From assembly GCA_965644295.1 (NCBI GenBank), contig CBFFRP010000433.1:1-64000 (forward strand): a DNA stretch of 64,000 nucleotides, read 5' to 3'. The position numbers and the translations under genes are program-made. Source of the DNA: Paraphysomonas bandaiensis. Lineage: Eukaryota > Protista > Chrysophyceae. The notes beneath the pieces are model-generated. The model searched no databases, had not been told where the DNA came from, and saw only the letters and a list, made by a program, of their open reading frames with translations. Below are positions 1,678 through 34,365 of the stretch, piece by piece. Within the stretch, counting starts at the first letter, position 1. Every line of letters starts with the position of its first letter.

Positions 1678-2453
1678 CAGGGCTAGGAAACAATATATTG
1701 CAATACTATTGTTAGAGAGCGTTCCATCAATACTATTGATGGAGATTTTAAACAGGCCCAACAATACAATTACAATATATTGCAATATATTGTCAATGTA
1801 TTGCAATATATTGTCAATGTATTGCAATATATTAGTATGACTAATCAGTAAGTAAACACATCCGTAGATTCCATTTTTAGTATTAGTCATTAAGATCACA
1901 TGACAACCAAACCAACACTGCTTATAGCTAATAAATATCCACCTCGTCCTCATCCTCTGATCCATCATCGGTGACGTCAACATCACCATATTCATCCAAG
2001 TATGCTAGTATCCGGCCACAACTGTCGAATAGCTTTCAGAAACAACAGCATATTAAGTAGGATGGATACTTTTGCGCAACACTGATATAATAATATGTTT
2101 AGCTGCGCTGAACAGAAGTTCCCATGTATTGGGAGTACATACCAGGGCCTGGTAACCGTTAATGACTCGTGGATCTCTACGTTTCTTAATTTTTTGAGCT
2201 GACTGAAGATTTTTATTTGCACAGTCAACATCAGCTTCATCATCCTCTGTAATGTTGTAACCAATTTCTCGGTTATTTATATCCATTTCGCAACCTACAG
2301 TTGAGTATCTTCTCTTATATGACTATCATAATATTGATTGCAATATATTGTGAGCTACCTTAACTGAAACAATAATGATGGGATTTTTGGCCGGTCGACC
2401 AATCAATACATTTTACAATGTATTGCAATCCAATATATTGTTTCCTTGCCCTG
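1678..2453. mobile_element. Non-autonomous TIR DNA transposon, hAT-like
   Basis: 23-bp TIRs CAGGGCTAGGAAACAATATATTG / CAATATATTGTTTCCTTGCCCTG (1 mismatch). Repeated subterminal palindrome CAATATATTG. Degenerate flanks CGTAACATT / CATAACATG. CAGGG termini are typical of hAT. Confidence 0.7.
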
Positions 2454-3195
2454 CATAACATGTAATGTTCGTAGGAATAGTAACGATTCTAGACTATATG
2501 AATTCATGTTTCTACACTTAGGTTTCACAATCAACATTATACGTTAATTAAGACACTAAGTAATAATAGTATAATAGTTCTACTTTCCAATCTTTGGTGT
2601 CGTACTTGGAGCTGATATATGTGATTACAAGAATCCCGCGAAGGTTGGGGCGGCAACAGAATCTGTACTCTGCACGTTGGTACACGGGTACGCAAGTGGT
2701 AGAACCAGGGCAAAATCTCGGTATTATGTGGTTTGCCAGCAAGCCTACACTATGGCCACACTCTCAGAATGGGGTAATCATAGTAGTGAAATGTATTGAC
2801 CGTATATATATATCTAAGATCTTAGATCGCATGGAATATATTGGTTGTTGTGTAGTTGCGATAACATGAAGTTGGCGATTGACAATGAACGATAAGTGAT
2901 ATTAATCTTAATGTTACTACTTTATAGTTATATCATTGAGTGTGTATTACGTTCAGTTAATTAAGCCTGAACCATCCAAACATGTCAATTCCGTATAGAG
3001 AGAAGGTTTGAATTTTGAATAAACCAATAAAACACAATTATTAAGAAACAACATATCCTGCTCCTAATATTAAATGTAAAGGTTGTTAAGCTATTCTCTA
3101 GTAATTCTCAGTACCATGATACTGATAATATATAGTTCATATACTTCGAAGTACACAAAACATGTTCAACTAGGAATGCGATAGTATGGCCTCTA

Positions 3196-3972
3196 TTAGG
3201 CTTTTACTTCAAGTAGCTCAACGTCGAACACAAGAGTAGACGCCGGGGGAATAACTGGAGGAGAACCATTGTCCCCATAAGCAAGATCAGAGGGAATTAC
3301 AAGGGTGGCTTTGCCACCCTCCTTCATCATTTTGATTCCCTCAGCCCAACCGGCAATGACCTTATCGCACTGAAACTCAAGAGGACTACCGCGCTCTACA
3401 CTTGAGTCAAATACCTTACCATCTACGAAGGTGCCATGGTAATGCACAACAACAGATGCACCATCTTCTACGCCTTTACCGGTACCAGCAACAGTTTCGT
3501 GGAAGATTAGCCCGCTTGACGTACGCTGAGCATTGGGGTTTTTCACGAGAAAATCAGCCATGAAGTTGACTCCCTCCTTCTTTTTCTCATTCATATTAGC
3601 ATCCGCACGTGCAGTGAGAACAGCATTGCAGGCCGGACCATATTCAGATAGCAATCCTTGAGAATTCTTCACTTTATCAGAGAGCATATCATTGTGGCCA
3701 TCCAGCATTGCCTGAAGCTCTTCGCTATTAAGCAGACTTTTTAGCTGGCTTCCCGTCTTAATATCAATAAGAGATAAGATACAAATGCTTATAAGTCAAT
3801 AGCACACCTGCATTGCTAAGTTAACACCGAGTGCATAAAACTTTTTCATTTCTTCATCTTTTGGCATATTTTCTCCATCATAAGTGGAGAATGCTCTTAT
3901 AACAGGCTGTCCTGTAGACATACCCATCCTTTTGGTTGCATTAATTGCGGATCTACGGAATAACATTGACAT
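3196..3972 (-). CDS. FKBP-type peptidyl-prolyl isomerase (FkpA/Mip-like), probable mitochondrial presequence; 1 intron (about 3758-3808)
   Basis: Motifs VHYHGTFVDGKVFDSS, VIAGWAEG, IPSDLAYG, IPPASTLVFDVELL. The upstream exon reads MSMLFRRSAINATKR...KKFYALGVNLA. Confidence 0.93.
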
Positions 3973-22487: not shown

Positions 22488-22627
22488 CATACATACATAC
22501 ATACATACATACATACATACATACATACATACATACATACATACATACATACATACATACATACATACATACATACATACATACATACATACATACATAC
22601 ATACATACATACATACATACATACATA
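22488..22627 (+). repeat. (CATA)n microsatellite, about 35 units, left target flank of transposon copy 1
   Basis: Perfect CATA array ending in TA immediately before the TIR. Confidence 0.98.
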
Positions 22628-22874
22628 CTGTACGTTTCTGTCAACTTTTATCCACGCACTCGTTTTTCTGTAAAATGTGGAAGGTACCGTACTCAAGCCC
22701 GCACCATAATGGTGTGGAACTATATAAGTGGTGATGATGAGTGACCAGTGGTATGTATGGTGTTGCTGGTGAGTAATAGATCCAGGGAGGTGGGTGTTGA
22801 AGGAGGAGCTCTCTCATCACAGCATGGTATCATACATACAGAACATAATAACAGCGAGAACATATCATAGTAGC

Positions 22875-23514
22875 ATGGAATCAACTACCACGGAATCAAC
22901 TACCACGGAATCAACTACCACGGAATCAACTACCACGGAATCAACTACCACAGGGGGCATTAGAAAAGTCGGTGATGGGGAAACCAAAAATCGTAACTCC
23001 TCTGCGTTAGCTCAGTTTGCGAAGTACTTGGAGATGCGGTTCGACGGGAAGAAGAGGTATAAGGAACTCATAGACAGTGATATAAATGTAGAACTATTTC
23101 AATGTTTCGGTGGCTTTTTGATCGATCACGCCGTCCATGGAACAACGAAGAAGCCTTTGACCCTAGGTACTGCTTGGCAGTATTTGTCAGACACGAAGAC
23201 TGCGCTGACGAAGCGATTTAAAAGAAATGAGTTATTAAGCAGCTCCAATGAGCTGTGGTACAAAGATGTGAGAGCGGCAGTATCAAAGCATATTATCAAG
23301 CGGTGTATCGCACAAGGAGTGCGTATATCAGAGAAAACAAGTCCAGTGGGGAAAGAACTAATGAAGCGCATAGGTGAATACATTATACATCGGGCATCTG
23401 ATTTCTCCGGTAAGTGGACATACTTCACATATCTATGATTTACTGTATGCTAATAAACTTTATTTAGAAGTGAAGAAGTATTCATTGTACAATCTCTATT
23501 TGGTTTTTCACATG
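22875..23514 (+). pseudogene. Truncated tyrosine-recombinase-like gene (N-terminal core-binding region), copy 1
   Basis: LFQCFGGFL...PLTLGTAWQYLSDTKTAL...WYKDVR...KRCI...EKTSPVGKELMKRIGEYI resembles, from recall, the N-terminal part of stramenopile/oomycete Crypton-like YR proteins. There is a GT-AG intron at 23410-23467, and the reading is cut off after VFHM. No R-H-R-Y catalytic residues are visible. Confidence 0.55.
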
Positions 23515-23727
23515 TTATCACCTATCATTCAAGCACTCATTAACGTGTATCTGCTGCATATGGCTGCCTCGTCATATTACTATATACATATACTCGATGC
23601 ATGTGATATGATGCACTATGCTATGATGCACTCTGCTGATTGGATCACTCGATGGGCGCACTTGCTGTGCGGCCTTTGTGTAAAAACAAGGGTGTGGGAT
23701 CCCGCACCTGCGGTGCGGGCTAAATAA

Positions 23728-23881
23728 TTTTTCCACAAAAACACTCTCTCCACACCCATTCCGACGACTCTCCAATTCTGACACGAGCATTCCACAAGCA
23801 TTCCATTCTACCCCTGGCGGACTCAAATTATACCCACAACTCCATTACACTGTACAATATGTAACAATATGGCTGCAGCTC
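23728..23881 (+). promoter_or_regulatory. Internal 154-bp inverted repeat (partner 26880-27033) holding the upstream region and first codons of both transposon genes
   Basis: 153/154 identity to the reverse complement of 26880-27033. It ends in ATGGCTGCAGCTC, so both ORFs start MAAA, and it contains repeated CATTCC motifs. The promoter role is inferred. Confidence 0.85.
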
Positions 23882-24825
23882 CTGTATTGGATCTTTCTGA
23901 AGACTTCATTTATGATCATCCGGTGTTTCGAATTGATCACAGACTTGTTGAGCATGAGCCTGTTGAGGCAGAGGAAGGAATATCACAACATGGTTTGTCT
24001 AGGCATCAATATACAGTATTGTTTTGGTACAAATGTTGTTTTAAGGATACCACTCTGCTTGAATGCGCAGAGTTTCTGAGAATTGTTTGCAACGTGACTG
24101 TGAGCCGATCCACAGTGTGCAGAGCACTCCTCCGACTTGGTTTCAAGAAAAAGCATATGAAGTACATCGCCAAGTATCTTGACGAGAATGATAGAGTGGC
24201 ATTTTGGGTCAATCCGCCTGATCATTCACTGCGACCGGGTGTGCTTGGGGTTTATTATCGGGACATTGTGGACCTAGACGAAAGCGGCTTTTACGTCTCC
24301 AATTCACGGCGTGTCTGTGGTCACTCTCTTGGGAGCACCTCAAGCAGTTCTATTGGAAACAAAGCCCGCATGCTGCCCCACTACTCATTGCTAGTTGCTA
24401 TCGACGCTCGCAAAGGTGTGATCAACAACATATTTTATCCACATGGCACAACTTCGGAGGTATTCTACCACTTTGTTGTGTACCTGTTAATTCCCAGTCT
24501 TGAGGGTACTGGGAGACGTGTCATTACAATGGATCGCTTGAGTGCTCATTTTGGAGTTGTGGTCAAAGCTCTAACGGATGCTGGACATTATGTTGTCTTT
24601 CGTCCTGCTTCGTCCCCTACCTTTGCACCAGTGGAATGGGTATTCAGTTACGTGGACAAGTTTCTTCAAGAGCATAGTCCACAAGTCACGCCCAATTCAT
24701 TAAAGTTTTGGTTAAGGACGGCTTTGGATACAATTAGTAGGTTTGACGTCAAACAGTATATGGCAGCTGCACACTTTTATGTCCCGACGTATCCGTACAC
24801 ACCTTACCGCGGTGAACAATCATAG
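23869..24825 (+). CDS. IS630/Tc1-like DDE transposase (318 aa, DD33E)
   Basis: HTH TLLECAEFL..VSRSTVCRALLRLG. Catalytic motifs DLDESGF, MDRLSAH and SPTFAPVEW. Confidence 0.92.
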   Translation: MAAAPVLDLSEDFIYDHPVFRIDHRLVEHEPVEAEEGISQHGLSRHQYTVLFWYKCCFKDTTLLECAEFLRIVCNVTVSRSTVCRALLRLGFKKKHMKYIAKYLDENDRVAFWVNPPDHSLRPGVLGVYYRDIVDLDESGFYVSNSRRVCGHSLGSTSSSSIGNKARMLPHYSLLVAIDARKGVINNIFYPHGTTSEVFYHFVVYLLIPSLEGTGRRVITMDRLSAHFGVVVKALTDAGHYVVFRPASSPTFAPVEWVFSYVDKFLQEHSPQVTPNSLKFWLRTALDTISRFDVKQYMAAAHFYVPTYPYTPYRGEQS

Positions 24826-25351
24826 GGGTGCTATGTGGTTGTAGTGCACGTTGTGACTGCGCTGCACTTAGTATTTATTAATCTGGTTATTTATTCTTAA
24901 CTATTCTAAATTATTATTCTTAAGTAATTTGGAACAGTATATTGCAATACCTTGCAAATGATATTAATCTGTTTAATATATTATTAGCTATATGTCGGTG
25001 GAATGCTTTTCACTTTTCACATTGTAATTATATGATATGTTACTAGTTTCATACGAAATTGAAAGCGCAGTGCTCACGGCAATAGTGATGAGAGTAAGCT
25101 TGTGTAATTTGGGCTCAAAATGAGTCCATTAAAAATTTGGGTGAATGTGTGATTATTACACAGTTCTAGTGATGACATAATATGATTAATAATTAATACA
25201 TTAATTAACAATAATAAAATTTATATAAAACTTCTTGACAACGATTGAATAATAATAACAGCGAAAAGCAATAATAATAAAAGGCTATATCTGGAATCAG
25301 CAGGCTATAATAAGAAAACAAACTAATAAGAAAAGACACAATGCTAAGGGT

Positions 25352-26892
25352 CTACTCCGGGAAAGTGCCATCTGAAGTGGGCTCCAGCTTCAGCTCATTC
25401 AAATCATGAACTAAATCAGGCCTCAACACAACCACCACCGCATTGACAGCAGCCACACAACCTTTCAAGTCCATCTCTGTATCGTGACTGTACGCGTTAT
25501 TTGGCGACAGTGGAGCCGACACTGGATGTAGCAGGGAAAAATTCTGTCCGCAAGCCGCTTGTTTTCTGAGACACTGATGGTGAGGAGTCGTGCGATTGTT
25601 TCTTTGCAGTCCTCATATAACACCTGGGCCTCTCTTCCTATATTTAAAGCAACAAAGTGAGCGTACAACTGTTGTCTGAAGAATGTCAGGAAAGTCACAG
25701 TCTCCTCACGGGCCTGGAGTTCAACTGCACTCAGCTCAGGGGCACTGGTTGGAGCACAACCGTTCTCCTCCATGCGGCGTCTTTTGGCAGCCAACCCATC
25801 GTCTGCATTAGGAATGTCTGTAACTCCCTCCACATATTCCGGTGGAGCCGAAGCAACCGCGCGCACAGATGCGTCGTCCAGTGCCTTTCGTTGCTCCTCT
25901 GTTAATAGGCGCACAGCATTATGTCGGGAAATGGTTGCAATCAAAGACTTAATCGGAACATCCATATCAATGGCCGCCTCAAGATTCTTCATGGTTTCAA
26001 CTAATCGGTAGGTGGCATGGGGATGAAGTAAAAAAGATCGTTGGTCCGTCTGGTCTTTCTGGTGTTCTTCCCGAACTCTGGACATAACTGCATCTGATGC
26101 CCCGCAACGCTCAAGAAATCCAGGTGCTTGGCGCTCCAACTCTGACAGCACAATGTATCCATCCGGCTCTTGCAGGAGTTTATTCAAATGAATTAGAGCA
26201 AAGTTATTGACCTCAAAAGACGCTCTAGTGCTGTTCATTCGAGTCTGCTCGGCCAGTGCATTCATGTAAATCTGTCGCCGCTTCTTATCGTACTCCGAGA
26301 TGACTTCAGCATGCTGTGGATACTTAGGGTAGGGACAATCCGACCACGGATCAGGCTGAATCCTAAACTCAACACTATGGGGCGCCACATTGCATACGGG
26401 ACAGCTACACTTCACTTTAACAATTAAATCACAACCCTTGCACCTGCCCATTGGAGGTATGAATGTGGTGGCGTTGCTGATGGGGCAGTCGTGCCTTAAT
26501 GCTGCTTGCAACTCCGCACTCGACATGCACACAGGACAACGAGTGCACTCCAAGCGATCATCTTTACTTGCTTTTTTCATCTCTGCGGCTTTGCAGTAGA
26601 ACACGTCGTCCCTTTCTTCGTCATTTGTTATTGGTAGCCGTCGAACATCTTTCTTTGCGCGCACGTGTTTCAGGAATCCCTTCCAGATGGTATAATGATG
26701 AAGACACCCAGGACACCTCACACCATCTTGTGGTGGATTTCTTGTGTTCGATTTGAACCTTTCCTGCCCACCGTGAAGTACGGTGTGTTCTGGAACAACA
26801 TCGCGGAGTGATGGGAGGTGAGCGGCCACCAAATTCTCGGAAGGAGCAAACACGAATATATCGCCACCATCGTGGTGATGAGCTGCAGCCAT
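25352..26892 (-). CDS. Transposon-borne Cys/His-rich orphan protein, copy 1 (1-bp frameshift near 25540)
   Basis: Nearly identical to 31312-32853, but A5 instead of A6 truncates the ORF at 25465. CPGC..H, CxxC clusters and an AKRRR NLS-like motif. Confidence 0.8.
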
Positions 26893-27068
26893 ATTGTTAC
26901 ATATCGTACAGTGTAATGGAGTTGTGGGTATAATTTGAGTCCGCCAGGGGTAGAATGGAATGCTTGTGGAATGCTCGTGTCAGAATTGGAGAGTCGTCGG
27001 AATGGGTGTGGAGAGAGTGTTTTTGTGGAAAAACGAGTGCGTGGATAAAAGTTGACAGAAACGTACAG

Positions 27069-27084
27069 TACATACATACATACA

Positions 27085-27118
<34 letters not shown>
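27069..27118 (+). repeat. (TACA)n spacer between the two transposon copies
   Basis: 50-bp array starting and ending in TA. Confidence 0.97.
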
Positions 27119-27365
27119 CTGTACGTTTCTGTCAACTTTTATCCACGCACTCGTTTTTCTGTAAAATGTGGAAGGTACCGTACTCAAGCCCGCACCATAA
27201 TGGTGTGGAACTATATAAGTGGTGATGATGAGTGACCAGTGGTATGTATGGTGTTGCTGGTGAGTAATAGATCCAGGGAGGTGGGTGTTGAAGGAGGAGC
27301 TCTCTCATCACAGCATGGTATCATACATACAGAACATAATAACAGCGAGAACATATCATAGTAGC

Positions 27366-28187
27366 ATGGAATCAACTACCACGGAATCAACTACCACGGA
27401 ATCAACTACCACGGAATCAACTACCACAGGGGGCATTAGAAAAGTCGGTGATGGGGAAACCAAAAATCGTAACTCCTCTGCGTTAGCTCAGTTTGCGAAG
27501 TACTTGGAGATGCGGTTCGACGGGAAGAAGAGGTATAAGGAACTCATAGACAGTGATATAAATGTAGAACTATTTCAATGTTTCGGTGGCTTTTTGATCG
27601 ATCACGCCGTCCATGGAACAACGAAGAAGCCTTTGACCCTAGGTACTGCTTGGCAGTATTTGTCAGACACGAAGACTGCGCTGACGAAGCGATTTAAAAG
27701 AAATGAGTTATTAAGCAGCTCCAATGAGCTGTGGTACAAAGATGTGAGAGCGGCAGTATCAAAGCATATTATCAAGCGGTGTATCGCACAAGGAGTGCGT
27801 ATATCAGAGAAAACAAGTCCAGTGGGGAAAGAACTAATGAAGCGCATAGGTGAATACATTATACATCGGGCATCTGATTTCTCCGGTAAGTGGACATACT
27901 TCACATATCTATGATTTACTGTATACCCTATGGTAGACAACGTCAACAAACAGAAAAAACTAAATCGAGTATTGACTAAAGGACTCGGCCTATTGTACGA
28001 TGACGAGAAACGTTTTCTTGATGAGCCGAAACCCTGTATGGCAAGTCAGTCTACTTCGTACAGAGAATGGAAGAGTAATTTAAAATGCATAGCTGAAAAG
28101 GTTGAATTGCGTGTTATTGTTGATTTATTTGGTCAGGAAAATTACGACAAGTTTCACCCCAAAAAAAAGCCTCTAAGAAATACATAA
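27366..28187 (+). pseudogene. Internally deleted tyrosine-recombinase-like gene, copy 2 (N-terminal exon plus probable C-terminal fragment 27930-28187)
   Basis: Same exon 1 as copy 1 (4 versus 5 ESTTT repeats). It diverges inside the intron at 27925 and continues into an 85-aa coding fragment absent from copy 1. Confidence 0.5.
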
Positions 28188-28264
28188 ACAGTATATATGA
28201 TGCAATGAGTGCACGAAGGGACAGTGATGGTAACATTATTCCAAGGACAAAGAAAAGGAAACTT

Positions 28265-29190
28265 CAGTCTGATGTTAGTAATCTGTAGAATGCCAATATA
28301 TGTATTCATTTATAACCACTCCATCAACTTTTTATAATGTACCCTTATAATTAATGATTCATTAGTAATTGGAATACATCGTATCATTATTTACAGAGCA
28401 TACAACAGTATAATCAACCATTACAGCGTTCAGCATTTTATTATTCGACACAGTCTGATGTTAGTAATCTGTAGAATGCCTATATGTATTCATTTATAAC
28501 CACTCCATCAACTTTTTATAATGTACCCTTATAATTAATGATTCATTAGTAATTGGAATACATCGTATCATTATTTACAGAGCATACAACAGTATAATCA
28601 ACCATTACAGCGTGCAGCATTTTATTATTCGACACAGTCTGATGTTAGTAATCTGTAGAATGCCTATATGTATTCATTTATAACCACTCCATCAACTTTT
28701 TATACTGTACCCTTATAATTAATGATTCATTAGTAATTGGAATACATCGTATCATTATTTACAGAGCATACAACAGTATAATCAACCATCACAGCGTTCA
28801 GCATTTTATTATTCCACACCGTTCAGAATTCTTATCACATACAGCCATACTGCATACCCTTACACAACATGACACATATTCACTGCAAGATGGAACAGGG
28901 GCAGCCGGGCGCTTGTGTCGCTTAGGCATCCCTCTTGCACCGGTAAGTATAAACGTCATTGCGCCTACAACAGCATAATAAACCATCACAGCCTTCAGCA
29001 TTTTATTATTCCACACCGTTCAGAATTCTTATCACATACAGCCATACTGCATACCCTTACACAACATGACACATATTCACTGCAAGATGGTACAGGGGCA
29101 GCCGGGCGCTTGTGTCGCTTAGGCATCCCTCTTGCACCGGTAAGTATAAACGTCATTGCGCCTACAACAGCATAATAAACCATGACAACA
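28265..29190. repeat. Tandem arrays inside the YR-like module: 3 x about 185 bp, then 2 x 198 bp
   Basis: CAGTCTGATGTTAGTAATCTG at 28265, 28451 and 28635. TTCAGCATTTTATTATTCCACACCG at 28797 and 28995. Confidence 0.92.
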
Positions 29191-29828
29191 TTCAGCATAT
29201 CATATACCATCACACAACATAGTGCATGCATGATATACAGCCTTCTATTCCTTCAAATGTACCACTTCTCATCTCTCTACATACCTGACACTTTAAATAG
29301 GATGATGGGAGCATGATGCTCCCACCTGGAATTCAATCATTGATATCCATATCAAATCACTTCATACCATAATATACAGCCCTTCACAGTTCCTCTCCAT
29401 ACAGCCTTATAAACCTCGTCCAGTAACTGCATATCTCATCTCACAGTTTCATGAAATAAGATGGTAGCAACATGTTATCACCTATCATTCAAGCACTCAT
29501 TAACGTGTATCTGCTGCATATGGCTGCCTCGTCATATTACTATATACATATACTCGATGCATGTGATATGATGCACTATGCTATGATGCACTCTGCTGAT
29601 TGGATCACTCGATGGGCGCACTTGCTGTGCGGCCTTTGTGTAAAAACAAGGGTGCGGGATCCCGCACCTGCGGTGCGGGCTAAATAATTTTTCCACAAAA
29701 ACACTCTCTCCACACCCATTCCGACGACTCTCCAATTCTGACACGAGCATTCCACAAGCATTCCATTCTACCCCTGGCGGACTCAAATTATACCCACAAC
29801 TCCATTACACTGTACAATATGTAACAAT

Positions 29829-30785
29829 ATGGCTGCAGCTCCTGTATTGGATCTTTCTGAAGACTTCATTTATGATCATCCGGTGTTTCGAATTGATCAC
29901 AGACTTGTTGAGCATGAGCCTGTTGAGGCAGAGGAAGGAATATCACAACATGGTTTGTCTAGGCATCAATATACAGTATTGTTTTGGTACAAATGTTGTT
30001 TTAAGGATACCACTCTGCTTGAATGCGCAGAGTTTCTGAGAATTGTTTGCAACGTGACTGTGAGCCGATCCACAGTGTGCAGAGCACTCCTCCGACTTGG
30101 TTTCAAGAAAAAGCATATGAAGTACATCGCCAAGTATCTTGACGAGAATGATAGAGTGGCATTTTGGGTCAATCCGCCTGATCATTCACTGCGACCGGGT
30201 GTGCTTGGGGTTTATTATCGGGACATTGTGGACCTAGACGAAAGCGGCTTTTACGTCTCCAATTCACGGCGTGTCTGTGGTCACTCTCTTGGGAGCACCT
30301 CAAGCAGTTCTATTGGAAACAAAGCCCGCATGCTGCCCCACTACTCATTGCTAGTTGCTATCGACGCTCGCAAAGGTGTGATCAACAACATATTTTATCC
30401 ACATGGCACAACTTCGGAGGTATTCTACCACTTTGTTGTGTACCTGTTAATTCCCAGTCTTGAGGGTACTGGGAGACGTGTCATTACAATGGATCGCTTG
30501 AGTGCTCATTTTGGAGTTGTGGTCAAAGCTCTAACGGATGCTGGACATTATGTTGTCTTTCGTCCTGCTTCGTCCCCTACCTTTGCACCAGTGGAATGGG
30601 TATTCAGTTACGTGGACAAGTTTCTTCAAGAGCATAGTCCACAAGTCACGCCCAATTCATTAAAGTTTTGGTTAAGGACGGCTTTGGATACAATTAGTAG
30701 GTTTGACGTCAAACAGTATATGGCAGCTGCACACTTTTATGTCCCGACGTATCCGTACACACCTTACCGCGGTGAACAATCATAG
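29829..30785 (+). CDS. IS630/Tc1-like DDE transposase, copy 2
   Basis: Protein identical to 23869-24825. Confidence 0.92.
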   Translation: MAAAPVLDLSEDFIYDHPVFRIDHRLVEHEPVEAEEGISQHGLSRHQYTVLFWYKCCFKDTTLLECAEFLRIVCNVTVSRSTVCRALLRLGFKKKHMKYIAKYLDENDRVAFWVNPPDHSLRPGVLGVYYRDIVDLDESGFYVSNSRRVCGHSLGSTSSSSIGNKARMLPHYSLLVAIDARKGVINNIFYPHGTTSEVFYHFVVYLLIPSLEGTGRRVITMDRLSAHFGVVVKALTDAGHYVVFRPASSPTFAPVEWVFSYVDKFLQEHSPQVTPNSLKFWLRTALDTISRFDVKQYMAAAHFYVPTYPYTPYRGEQS

Positions 30786-31311
30786 GGGTGCTATGTGGTT
30801 GTAGTGCACGTTGTGACTGCGCTGCACTTAGTATTTATTAATCTGGTTATTTATTCTTAACTATTCTAAATTATTATTCTTAAGTAATTTGGAACAGTAT
30901 ATTGCAATACCTTGCAAATGATATTAATCTGTTTAATATATTATTAGCTATATGTCGGTGGAATGCTTTTCACTTTTCACATTGTAATTATATGATATGT
31001 TACTAGTTTCATACGAAATTGAAAGCGCAGTGCTCACGGCAATAGTGATGAGAGTAAGCTTGTGTAATTTGGGCTCAAAATGAGTCCATTAAAAATTTGG
31101 GTGAATGTGTGATTATTACACAGTTCTAGTGATGACATAATATGATTAATAATTAATACATTAATTAACAATAATAAAATTTATATAAAACTTCTTGACA
31201 ACGATTGAATAATAATAACAGCGAAAAGCAATAATAATAAAAGGCTATATCTGGAATCAGCAGGCTATAATAAGAAAACAAACTAATAAGAAAAGACACA
31301 ATGCTAAGGGT

Positions 31312-32853
31312 CTACTCCGGGAAAGTGCCATCTGAAGTGGGCTCCAGCTTCAGCTCATTCAAATCATGAACTAAATCAGGCCTCAACACAACCACCACCG
31401 CATTGACAGCAGCCACACAACCTTTCAAGTCCATCTCTGTATCGTGACTGTACGCGTTATTTGGCGACAGTGGAGCCGACACTGGATGTAGCAGGGAAAA
31501 AATTCTGTCCGCAAGCCGCTTGTTTTCTGAGACACTGATGGTGAGGAGTCGTGCGATTGTTTCTTTGCAGTCCTCATATAACACCTGGGCCTCTCTTCCT
31601 ATATTTAAAGCAACAAAGTGAGCGTACAACTGTTGTCTGAAGAATGTCAGGAAAGTCACAGTCTCCTCACGGGCCTGGAGTTCAACTGCACTCAGCTCAG
31701 GGGCACTGGTTGGAGCACAACCGTTCTCCTCCATGCGGCGTCTTTTGGCAGCCAACCCATCGTCTGCATTAGGAATGTCTGTAACTCCCTCCACATATTC
31801 CGGTGGAGCCGAAGCAACCGCGCGCACAGATGCGTCGTCCAGTGCCTTTCGTTGCTCCTCTGTTAATAGGCGCACAGCATTATGTCGGGAAATGGTTGCA
31901 ATCAAAGACTTAATCGGAACATCCATATCAATGGCCGCCTCAAGATTCTTCATGGTTTCAACTAATCGGTAGGTGGCATGGGGATGAAGTAAAAAAGATC
32001 GTTGGTCCGTCTGGTCTTTCTGGTGTTCTTCCCGAACTCTGGACATAACTGCATCTGATGCCCCGCAACGCTCAAGAAATCCAGGTGCTTGGCGCTCCAA
32101 CTCTGACAGCACAATGTATCCATCCGGCTCTTGCAGGAGTTTATTCAAATGAATTAGAGCAAAGTTATTGACCTCAAAAGACGCTCTAGTGCTGTTCATT
32201 CGAGTCTGCTCGGCCAGTGCATTCATGTAAATCTGTCGCCGCTTCTTATCGTACTCCGAGATGACTTCAGCATGCTGTGGATACTTAGGGTAGGGACAAT
32301 CCGACCACGGATCAGGCTGAATCCTAAACTCAACACTATGGGGCGCCACATTGCATACGGGACAGCTACACTTCACTTTAACAATTAAATCACAACCCTT
32401 GCACCTGCCCATTGGAGGTATGAATGTGGTGGCGTTGCTGATGGGGCAGTCGTGCCTTAATGCTGCTTGCAACTCCGCACTCGACATGCACACAGGACAA
32501 CGAGTGCACTCCAAGCGATCATCTTTACTTGCTTTTTTCATCTCTGCGGCTTTGCAGTAGAACACGTCGTCCCTTTCTTCGTCATTTGTTATTGGTAGCC
32601 GTCGAACATCTTTCTTTGCGCGCACGTGTTTCAGGAATCCCTTCCAGATGGTATAATGATGAAGACACCCAGGACACCTCACACCATCTTGTGGTGGATT
32701 TCTTGTGTTCCATTTGAACCTTTCCTGCCCACCGTGAAGTACGGTGTGTTCTGGAACAACATCGCGGAGTGATGGGAGGTGAGCGGCCACCAAATTCTCG
32801 GAAGGAGCAAACACGAATATATCGCCACCATCGTGGTGATGAGCTGCAGCCAT
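31312..32853 (-). CDS. Transposon-borne Cys/His-rich orphan protein (513 aa, intact)
   Basis: Long intronless ORF with CPGCLHHYTIWKGFLKHVR (C2H2-like), CTRCPVC, CKGC..CSCPVC and an AKRRR basic motif. Confidence 0.85.
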   Translation of the reverse strand: MAAAHHHDGGDIFVFAPSENLVAAHLPSLRDVVPEHTVLHGGQERFKWNTRNPPQDGVRCPGCLHHYTIWKGFLKHVRAKKDVRRLPITNDEERDDVFYCKAAEMKKASKDDRLECTRCPVCMSSAELQAALRHDCPISNATTFIPPMGRCKGCDLIVKVKCSCPVCNVAPHSVEFRIQPDPWSDCPYPKYPQHAEVISEYDKKRRQIYMNALAEQTRMNSTRASFEVNNFALIHLNKLLQEPDGYIVLSELERQAPGFLERCGASDAVMSRVREEHQKDQTDQRSFLLHPHATYRLVETMKNLEAAIDMDVPIKSLIATISRHNAVRLLTEEQRKALDDASVRAVASAPPEYVEGVTDIPNADDGLAAKRRRMEENGCAPTSAPELSAVELQAREETVTFLTFFRQQLYAHFVALNIGREAQVLYEDCKETIARLLTISVSENKRLADRIFSLLHPVSAPLSPNNAYSHDTEMDLKGCVAAVNAVVVVLRPDLVHDLNELKLEPTSDGTFPE

Positions 32854-33029
32854 ATTGTTACATATCGTACAGTGTAATGGAGTTGTGGGTATAATTTGAG
32901 TCCGCCAGGGGTAGAATGGAATGCTTGTGGAATGCTCGTGTCAGAATTGGAGAGTCGTCGGAATGGGTGTGGAGAGAGTGTTTTTGTGGAAAAACGAGTG
33001 CGTGGATAAAAGTTGACAGAAACGTACAG

Positions 33030-34365
33030 TATGTATGTATGTATGTATGTATGTATGTATGTATGTATGTATGTATGTATGTATGTATGTATGTATGTAT
33101 GTATGTATGTATGTATGTATGTATGTATGTATGTATGTATGTATGTATGTATGTATGTATGTATGTATGTATGTATGTATGTATGTATGTATGTATGTAT
33201 GTATGTATGTATGTATGTATGTATGTATGTATGTATGTATGTATGTATGTATGTATGTATGTATGTATGTATGTATGTATGTATGTATGTATGTATGTAT
33301 GTATGTATGTATGTATGTATGTATGTATGTATGTATGTATGTATGTATGTATGTATGTATGTATGTATGTATGTATGTATGTATGTATGTATGTATGTAT
33401 GTATGTATGTATGTATGTATGTATGTATGTATGTATGTATGTATGTATGTATGTATGTATGTATGTATGTATGTATGTATGTATGTATGTATGTATGTAT
33501 GTATGTATGTATGTATGTATGTATGTATGTATGTATGTATGTATGTATGTATGTATGTATGTATGTATGTATGTATGTATGTATGTATGTATGTATGTAT
33601 GTATGTATGTATGTATGTATGTATGTATGTATGTATGTATGTATGTATGTATGTATGTATGTATGTATGTATGTATGTATGTATGTATGTATGTATGTAT
33701 GTATGTATGTATGTATGTATGTATGTATGTATGTATGTATGTATGTATGTATGTATGTATGTATGTATGTATGTATGTATGTATGTATGTATGTATGTAT
33801 GTATGTATGTATGTATGTATGTATGTATGTATGTATGTATGTATGTATGTATGTATGTATGTATGTATGTATGTATGTATGTATGTATGTATGTATGTAT
33901 GTATGTATGTATGTATGTATGTATGTATGTATGTATGTATGTATGTATGTATGTATGTATGTATGTATGTATGTATGTATGTATGTATGTATGTATGTAT
34001 GTATGTATGTATGTATGTATGTATGTATGTATGTATGTATGTATGTATGTATGTATGTATGTATGTATGTATGTATGTATGTATGTATGTATGTATGTAT
34101 GTATGTATGTATGTATGTATGTATGTATGTATGTATGTATGTATGTATGTATGTATGTATGTATGTATGTATGTATGTATGTATGTATGTATGTATGTAT
34201 GTATGTATGTATGTATGTATGTATGTATGTATGTATGTATGTATGTATGTATGTATGTATGTATGTATGTATGTATGTATGTATGTATGTATGTATGTAT
34301 GTATGTATGTATGTATGTATGTATGTATGTATGTATGTATGTATGTATGTATGTATGTATGTATG
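33030..34365 (+). repeat. (TATG)n perfect microsatellite, about 334 units
   Basis: Uninterrupted array directly abutting the right TIR of copy 2. Confidence 0.98.

Follow-up and report, generated by a model that had tools for sequence, protein, structure and literature searches.

Deletion derivatives of a predicted Crypton family split the terminal inverted repeats of a Tc1-like transposon in Paraphysomonas bandaiensis, probably by repeated integration

A tandem pair of Tc1-like elements with split left TIRs

We examined a 64,000-nucleotide stretch of the Paraphysomonas bandaiensis genome (the window; assembly GCA_965644295.1, contig CBFFRP010000433.1 [C433], positions 1–64,000) and searched 62.5 Mb of the genome in 669 contigs for related sequences. 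The window contains two tandem copies of an element of 3,377 bp, whose terminal inverted repeats (TIRs) are 189 bp long; the copies lie at 22628–27068 and 27119–33029 in a (CATA)n microsatellite. Both left TIRs are interrupted after base 41, immediately 3' of the sequence TTTTTC, and both right TIRs are unbroken. The inserts belong to a family described below as a predicted Crypton. The features of the pair are as follows.

22628..22668, plus strand: copy 1 left TIR, outer 41 bp; ends in the host-side TTTTTC (22663–22668), with CGCAC at 22655–22659
22669..23733, plus strand: copy 1 insert, 1,065 bp, ending with TTTTTC
23734..23881, plus strand: copy 1 left TIR, inner 148 bp; includes the start of the transposase ORF
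23869..24825, plus strand: copy 1 transposase, 318 aa; Pfam DDE_3, E = 2.6e-08, above the gathering score
26880..27068, minus strand: copy 1 right TIR, intact, one 189-bp block; holds an empty Crypton target (TTTTTC, minus strand, 27028–27033)
27119..27159, plus strand: copy 2 left TIR, outer 41 bp (from the TIR search)
27160..29693, plus strand: copy 2 insert, 2,534 bp, ending with TTTTTC
29694..29841, plus strand: copy 2 left TIR, inner 148 bp (from TIR comparison)
32841..33029, minus strand: copy 2 right TIR, intact, with an empty target (from TIR comparison)

This is exactly the layout claimed in a preliminary description of the locus: a 189-bp right block at 26880–27068 and a left counterpart split after base 41 by 1065 or 2534 bp, with TTTTTC at both junctions. 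The element of about 3.38 kb that was expected on removal of the inserts measures 3,376 bp and 3,377 bp in the two copies. A genome search with the 189-bp TIR also recovered the uninterrupted left TIRs that had been suggested as a check, in seven truly insert-free elements of 3,371–3,384 bp, each bounded by two complete 189-bp TIRs (on C388, C2, C297, C185, C78 [two copies] and C32). These insert-free copies, and the C111 and C396 junctions described below, were assessed by coordinates and identities. Genome-wide, the complete Tc1::Crypton composite was found only as the window's tandem pair, and not at multiple loci in the manner of the MarCry composite (see below).

The TIRs of the host element are 99% identical, and, besides the transposase, it has a convergent ORF encoding 475 or 513 aa. 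From sequence, we assign the element to the Tc1/mariner/IS630 superfamily on the basis of its DDE_3 transposase, its TIRs and its TA-abutting ends. Because these ends abut TA within (CATA)n, a TA duplication is inseparable from the microsatellite. The transposase and the convergent ORF both begin within the TIRs (23869–23880, and 26881–26892 on the minus strand) and have their first four codons, MAAA, in common. With the Crypton in the same orientation as the transposase gene and its 3' end 135 bp before the ATG of that gene, transcriptional read-through into the transposase is conceivable. We also looked for an IR/DR architecture (a second transposase-binding repeat within the TIR) and rejected it, the best internal match being no better than that of 49 of 500 shuffles.

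A second Tc1-like tandem pair, in inverted orientation, with no inserts and with a 97-bp gap, is present at C78:164549–171388, and repeated landing in one microsatellite seems typical of this transposon. In the window, the microsatellite reads (CATA)n/(ACAT)n at 22488–22627 and 27069–27118, with the opposite polarity, (ATGT)n, to the right of copy 2 (33030–34365). Such a flip in polarity is suggestive of inversion at the element or of a misjoin there.

The inserts are internally deleted members of a high-copy, nearly invariant family

In the genome search, the insert proved to belong to a family whose copies number at least 40; they are nearly identical and sit at unrelated loci, each immediately 3' of (T)TTTC. 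The preliminary description had proposed looking for the module at other TTTTTC sites, and it is found there in abundance. Ends were scored separately (at least 40 5' ends out of 46 candidates and 41 3' ends out of 49) and paired by contig. About 15 copies measure 3,855–3,871 bp and about 10 measure 2,534–2,549 bp; smaller classes comprise 3,419, 2,513, 2,351, 2,240, 1,830, 1,779, 1,525, 1,094 and 1,065 bp. Deletion breakpoints are common to the members within a size class. Divergence is nearly nil, with 2 private substitutions over 850 compared bp in 26–33 copies.

Alignment by blastn to a full-length copy (L061:501–4355) indicates that both window inserts are deletion derivatives. Insert 1 (22669–23733) corresponds to full-length positions 1–842 joined to 3632–3855, with 2,789 bp gone. 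Insert 2 (27160–29693) corresponds to positions 1–780, with one ESTTT unit fewer, joined to 2085–3855; its deletion junction lies near 27923, and it retains the coding region for the C-terminal tail together with 184-bp and 197-bp tandem repeats. The internal features of insert 1 are:

22698..22705, plus strand: CCCGCACC motif near the Crypton 5' end; the same 8-mer is inverted-paired at the 3' end
22875..23409, plus strand: Crypton exon 1, encoding the ESTTT repeat and then an N-terminal helical (core-binding-like) domain, with no catalytic residue
23410..23467, plus strand: intron, 58 bp, GT..AG; missing from transcript contig L064
23468..23510, plus strand: exon 2 stub, 43 bp; stops at the internal deletion junction
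23701..23719, plus strand: perfect inverted repeat CCCGCACC-TGC-GGTGCGGG, common to all copies; 14 bp separate it from the 3' end
23728..23733, plus strand: element-borne TTTTTC, the 3' terminus and putative crossover core; constant in 33 copies

From its placement at both ends, CCCGCACC is a candidate recombinase-binding motif. The 15-bp tandem repeat encoding ESTTT, which opens the recombinase (22875–22950 in insert 1; 27366–27425 in insert 2), is present in 4, 5 or 6 units in genomic copies and in 3 units in the transcript contig.

Full-length members encode a predicted tyrosine recombinase

The full-length copy L061:501–4355 contains one long gene, with exon 1 at 207–741, a 58-bp GT..AG intron and exon 2 from 800. 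An intron-less version of this gene is carried by JGI contig L064, whose sequence opens with 121 bp of a different host flank, again ending TTTTTTC, before the element. The absence of the intron from L064 suggests transcription and splicing of the family. The protein analysed was the stored JGI product P0001, of 742 aa.

Pfam and single-sequence PDB searches with the exon-2 ORF returned no match, and the first homologue search with the protein returned only itself. An exhaustive HMMER search then gave 560 relatives. Aligning 36 of these revealed four residues without any variation (R216, E219, K244 and R324) and two, W348 and Y359, that 35 of the 36 sequences share. A profile search of the PDB gave Cre as the sole match, at a weak E of ~0.08, with Cre R292, W315 and Y324 aligned to R324, W348 and Y359. 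The Pfam Phage_integrase model matches 2 of the 36 relatives and does not match P0001 itself. The AlphaFold (AF2) model of the protein has a pLDDT of 90.3 and a pTM of 0.86; its best Foldseek matches are Cre, Tre and Flp (probability 1.0), and VIA-align gives Z-scores of 13–15 against Flp, Ndc10 and both Cre domains. The closest ESM-Atlas clusters are from Bacillariophyta and Oomycota, followed by NDC10_II, DUF3504 and DUF3435, which we take to be recombinase-derived or Crypton-related families.

Since Pfam is silent and the PDB profile match is weak, the assignment rests mainly on the fold and the conserved residues. On this basis, full-length members of the family are predicted to carry a Cre/Flp fold with an R-K-R-W-Y catalytic set, that is, a Crypton tyrosine recombinase. 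An ORF scan and Pfam search of the 3,855-bp element found no reverse transcriptase, RNase H, Rep or helicase domain. A single recombinase gene with neither reverse transcriptase nor TIRs or long terminal repeats (LTRs) defines the element as a Crypton, and the lack of retroelement genes sets it apart from DIRS, Ngaro and VIPER. The preliminary description had assigned the module in the window to a Crypton-type tyrosine recombinase; this holds for the full-length family, by fold and conserved residues, and does not extend to the ORF in the window. Exon 1 ends at P0001 residue 195, the first catalytic arginine is R216, and both window inserts break before R216. The inserts keep the N-terminal helical domain and no catalytic residue, and are therefore non-autonomous.

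Close to where the gene ends, a homopolymer (L061:2807 and equivalents; 28145 in the window) is A8 in some copies and A9 in others and in the transcript. The A8 product ends in ...HPKKKPLRNT, whereas A9 gives the longer, P0001-type C-terminus with a PRTKKRKL tail that resembles a nuclear localisation signal. Copies with A9, such as those on C412, C297, C298, C196 and C193, are by their sequence potentially autonomous. The A8/A9 difference could be a true polymorphism or a long-read homopolymer error.

Insertion sites and the crossover region

Insertion sites of the family have a consistent sequence. TTTTC occupies positions −5 to −1 in 25–26 of 26 distinct sites, with T at −6 in 17 of the 26, and A is found at +5 to +7 in 21–23 of 33 distinct 3' flanks. 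The right-hand TTTTTC is unchanged in 33 copies, even where the core in the host is TTATTC, TTTGTC or ACTTTC. Empty TIR sites contain a single TTTTTC, and filled sites contain TTTTTC at both junctions. Since the sequence is fixed on the right, depends on the host on the left and occurs only once in empty sites, the terminal TTTTTC is best read as crossover microhomology and not as a target-site duplication. The terminal direct repeats of Cryptons have likewise been described as microhomology with the target (PMC3212892; PMC13465315). The direct repeats that were proposed to bound the module are thus present at both junctions and are not there by chance, but the right-hand copy belongs to the element.

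All copies begin TGTA, which places the exchange, by inference, within the T-run plus C or at its right edge. The element start, TGTAAAATG, itself fits the target pattern, so that the expected circle junction would resemble the target. A search of the assembly for a head-to-tail Crypton junction found none.

The downstream flanks of Cryptons (+8 to +40) contain GTACAG/CTGTAC in 6 of 33 cases, compared with 2 of 173 background TTTTC sites, and TACAG in 9 of 33, compared with 4% of the background. An additional element of the target, or a bias towards certain repeat-rich surroundings, could account for this excess. Separately, C66:296434–296638 holds a tandem repeat of 93-bp period with three occurrences of GTGGAGGTTTTCTGTAAAA, which is like the Crypton left junction; the locus is absent from the Crypton search results.

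The TIR resembles the preferred target

The target within the TIR reads CGCAC-TCG-TTTTTC/CACAAAAAC (the slash marks the point of insertion), with CGCAC 3–4 bases upstream of the T-run. CGCAC also lies at the core of CCCGCACC; the Crypton ends carry three copies of this 8-mer (one at 22698–22705 and the inverted pair at 23701–23719). Outside TIRs, CGCAC lies 3–7 bp upstream of TTTTC at 3 of 26 insertion sites, compared with 0 of 173 background TTTTC sites in the window.

Across the genome, 38 sites match the pattern CGCAC-N3-7-TTTTC-N4-AAA, compared with 8 for a reversed control. Tc1 TIRs account for 24 of the matches (18 empty and 6 occupied: C433 [two], C58 [two], C111 and C396) and non-TIR sequence for 14 (11 empty and 3 occupied: C298, C363 and C412), occupancy ratios that are partly circular because the motifs were picked from occupied sites; a control motif picked likewise, GTGGA upstream, also gave 2 of 18 occupied, which is not significant. 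The occupied site on C412 matches the TIR core at 18 of 20 bases and that on C354 at 13 of 13, the right arm AAAAAC being part of the shared sequence. A simple position-weight matrix was discarded as an explanation for a hot spot, since it scores the TIR site as unremarkable, with equally good sites at ~190 per Mb. CGCAC was spotted post hoc, and we regard it as a good lead for a candidate target feature. Because the TIR resembles the Crypton's preferred landing site, it was probably hit more than once.

Evidence for more than one integration into the TIR

The window copies and the empty elements on C2 and C388, which form sublineage A, show 100% identity across the 1,500 bp that adjoin the interrupted TIR. 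On C259, a third Tc1 copy with a Crypton is interrupted at the same position of the same, transposase-side TIR by a 1,525-bp derivative. This copy is 100% identical to the empty element on C297 over 1,500 bp and differs from the window copies by 9 SNPs (sublineage B), 1 of which falls within the 148-bp inner TIR. The two Tc1 sublineages are 0.6% apart, whereas their Cryptons differ by 0–1 base in 850 bp (~5 would be expected under co-divergence). Five deletion classes (1065, 2534, 1525, 2240 and 3855) are represented among the Cryptons that adjoin TIR sequence, and four of the five are also present at non-TIR loci. The same TIR position in two sublineages that have empty members, the different deletion classes and the near-invariance of the Cryptons together favour repeated independent integration over a hitchhiking composite. 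The window's two inserts may be separate events too.

There are ~25 TIR sites among ~10,900 TTTTC-N4-AAA sites genome-wide. Only if the events are truly independent would 2–4 TIR hits among ~45 insertions be far above chance.

Chimeric junctions bear on this proviso. Junctions in which the outer 41 bp lead into a Crypton and then into non-TIR sequence occur on C58 (two), C111 and C396. Conversely, C259:975–5842 (L011, L048) runs from non-TIR sequence through the Crypton into the inner TIR, the outer 41 bp being missing 5' of the Crypton. On C58, C111 and C259 the breakpoints fall precisely at Crypton ends. These junctions point to Crypton-Crypton recombination or to assembly problems. Given the chimeric junctions, the lack of the outer 41 bp on C259 and the transposase-side position of 3 of 3 assignable copies, ectopic recombination, gene conversion or misassembly, all acting on repeats of 100% identity, could mimic independent hits.

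The C58 locus (L063, C58:212860–219284; element at 213319–218825) reads (CATA)n, outer 41 bp, 1525-bp Crypton, 45 unique bp, inverted 3855-bp Crypton, outer 41 bp, (TACA)n. Two outer 41-bp Tc1 ends, inverted with respect to one another, thus flank tail-to-tail Cryptons, and the Tc1 interior is absent. A 127-bp MITE (outer 41 + 45 + outer 41 bp) was considered as the origin of this structure and rejected, the genome containing no uninterrupted copy. The family has only two 1,525-bp copies, on C259 and on the left side of C58, which may be reciprocal products of one exchange. On C396, a TIR end with one mismatch is joined to a Crypton 5' part at merely 94% identity, and this junction may represent an older event.

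Proposed explanation and alternatives

We propose that the inserts in the window are deleted, non-autonomous copies of a ~3.86-kb Crypton and that the TIR site was probably hit independently at least twice (once in sublineage A, in the window, and once in sublineage B, on C259); we put the probability of this reading at roughly 80%. Full-length copies would supply the Cre/Flp-like tyrosine recombinase. By analogy with the Crypton model, the recombinase would excise the element as a circle in which the ends are joined as ...AATAATTTTTC/TGTAAAATG..., and the circle junction would recombine with a chromosomal (T)TTTTC, usually one with AAA at +5 to +7. A crossover inside the shared T-run plus C would leave TTTTTC on both sides of a filled site and once in an empty one. 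The window copies would be immobile alone, but both Crypton ends are kept and the recombinase could act on them in trans.

A single ancestral insertion into the left TIR might instead have been spread as a composite by the DDE transposase, with insert-free copies arising by precise excision, so that the TIR toggles between two states. Such a composite has a precedent in the Mariner-Crypton element of Fusarium (PMC3212892), conservative excision by a tyrosine recombinase would restore the TIR exactly, and the outer 41 bp, probably the transposase-binding end, remain at the tip of the element; the transposase-side position of 3 of 3 assignable insertions would also follow. However, the complete composite is confined to the window's tandem pair, different deletion classes occupy the same TIR site (four of the five being found at unrelated loci as well), and Tc1 sublineages 0.6% apart carry Cryptons that differ by 0–1 base in 850 bp where ~5 are expected. 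We consider a single ancestral insertion unlikely. Repeated integration is also preferred to the hitchhiking or toggling module that the preliminary description had put forward. Nor do we favour one insertion whose apparent recurrence stems from ectopic homologous recombination, gene conversion, allelic haplotypes laid in tandem or misassembly, a reading that we judge quite improbable. A conversion tract would have to be very short, because the lineage-B allele lies no more than 148 bp from the C259 junction; more than 40 identical repeats of 1–4 kb are resolved in long contigs, which argues for long reads; and the independent sequence preference predicts a hot spot with no secondary process. 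These points are set against the chimeric junctions on C58 (two), C111, C396 and C259, the several contigs that begin or end within these repeats and the flip in microsatellite polarity to the right of copy 2.

The nature of the module is a separate matter. The perfect 8-bp hairpin 14 bp before the 3' end, the fixed short target and the lack of a target-site duplication are also traits expected of a Helitron-like (HUH) rolling-circle element, but the sole long ORF of the 3.86-kb element is the predicted tyrosine recombinase with its catalytic set intact, and the full-length element yielded no Rep or helicase domain. We regard rolling-circle transposition as very improbable. A further proposal can be entertained, in which the TIR is a natural attachment site for the Crypton and its reversible splitting after base 41 switches DDE mobility or transposase expression, or in which the Crypton rides on the outer 41-bp ends. 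We hold this to be unlikely. Recombinase homology (in the full-length family), insert-free elements and independent insertions of the module, on whose existence the preliminary description had made its proposal depend, were all found.

Comparison with known systems

Cryptons are among the least understood eukaryotic transposons and are usually rare, low-copy, old and hard to delimit. The present family is high-copy (at least 40) with divergence almost nil, and its target is resolved further, to AAA at +5 to +7 and possibly an upstream CGCAC. Like Cryptons in general and the CryptonS group in particular, it has one tyrosine-recombinase gene, no reverse transcriptase, no TIRs or LTRs, terminal direct repeats of 5–6 bp that represent microhomology with the target, and non-autonomous derivatives that retain both ends. 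Circle integration is the proposed route of Crypton movement, in the model of Goodwin et al. as cited in later work (PMC3212892; PMC13465315). CryptonS is a stramenopile group in which most members have TATGG termini (Kojima and Jurka, 2011; PMC3212892). The host group of the present family fits CryptonS, and its closest protein clusters are from diatoms and oomycetes; its termini and target are TTTTTC and not TATGG.

MarCry-1_FO of Fusarium oxysporum is a fixed Mariner-Crypton composite that exists in several copies; its recombinase gene is intact, and the DDE transposase mobilises the composite (PMC3212892). As there, Crypton sequence lies within a TIR-bounded unit of a Mariner-type DDE transposon with TA targets. 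In P. bandaiensis, however, a broken Crypton fragment splits the TIR itself, the transposon also exists Crypton-free, and independent loci lack the complete composite.

Comparison with Cre/loxP and Flp/FRT indicates a shared two-domain fold (predicted here) and a core site, TTTTT-C-NNNN-AAA(AA), that resembles A/T-tract arms around a short spacer. R216, E219, K244, R324, W348 and Y359 correspond to Cre R173, E176, K201, R292, W315 and Y324, respectively. Identity is nevertheless only ~13%, the position of Cre H289 is K, T or H in the Crypton family, and the protein has a long additional C-terminal region and belongs to a mobile element of a eukaryotic nucleus.

To our knowledge, Starships are giant cargo carriers confined to Pezizomycotina. 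The present element, by comparison, is 3.9 kb, cargo-free and in a stramenopile. Both are eukaryotic tyrosine-recombinase elements whose short direct repeats stem from a specific target, and a circle is the presumed intermediate for both; a circular intermediate has been reported for the fungal Starships, whose 'captain' recombinases contain DUF3435 (bioRxiv 10.64898/2026.09.21.753150).

Implications

Nested insertion alone is ordinary transposon biology, barring reversible excision or co-mobilisation. If true, the attachment-site proposal would mean a functional coupling of two unrelated transposition systems and not passive nesting. What is new here is the recurrent targeting of a TIR together with natural empty-site controls, which are provided by the intact TIR copies of another transposon. 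The result is a very young, probably transcribed Crypton family for which the ends, the crossover core and matched empty and filled sites are defined at single-base resolution. The proposed circle-integration mechanism and the target rules (a T-run followed by C, A residues at +5 to +7 and perhaps an upstream CGCAC) become directly testable, and the family leads towards a eukaryotic site-specific recombinase that is compact and has a short target.
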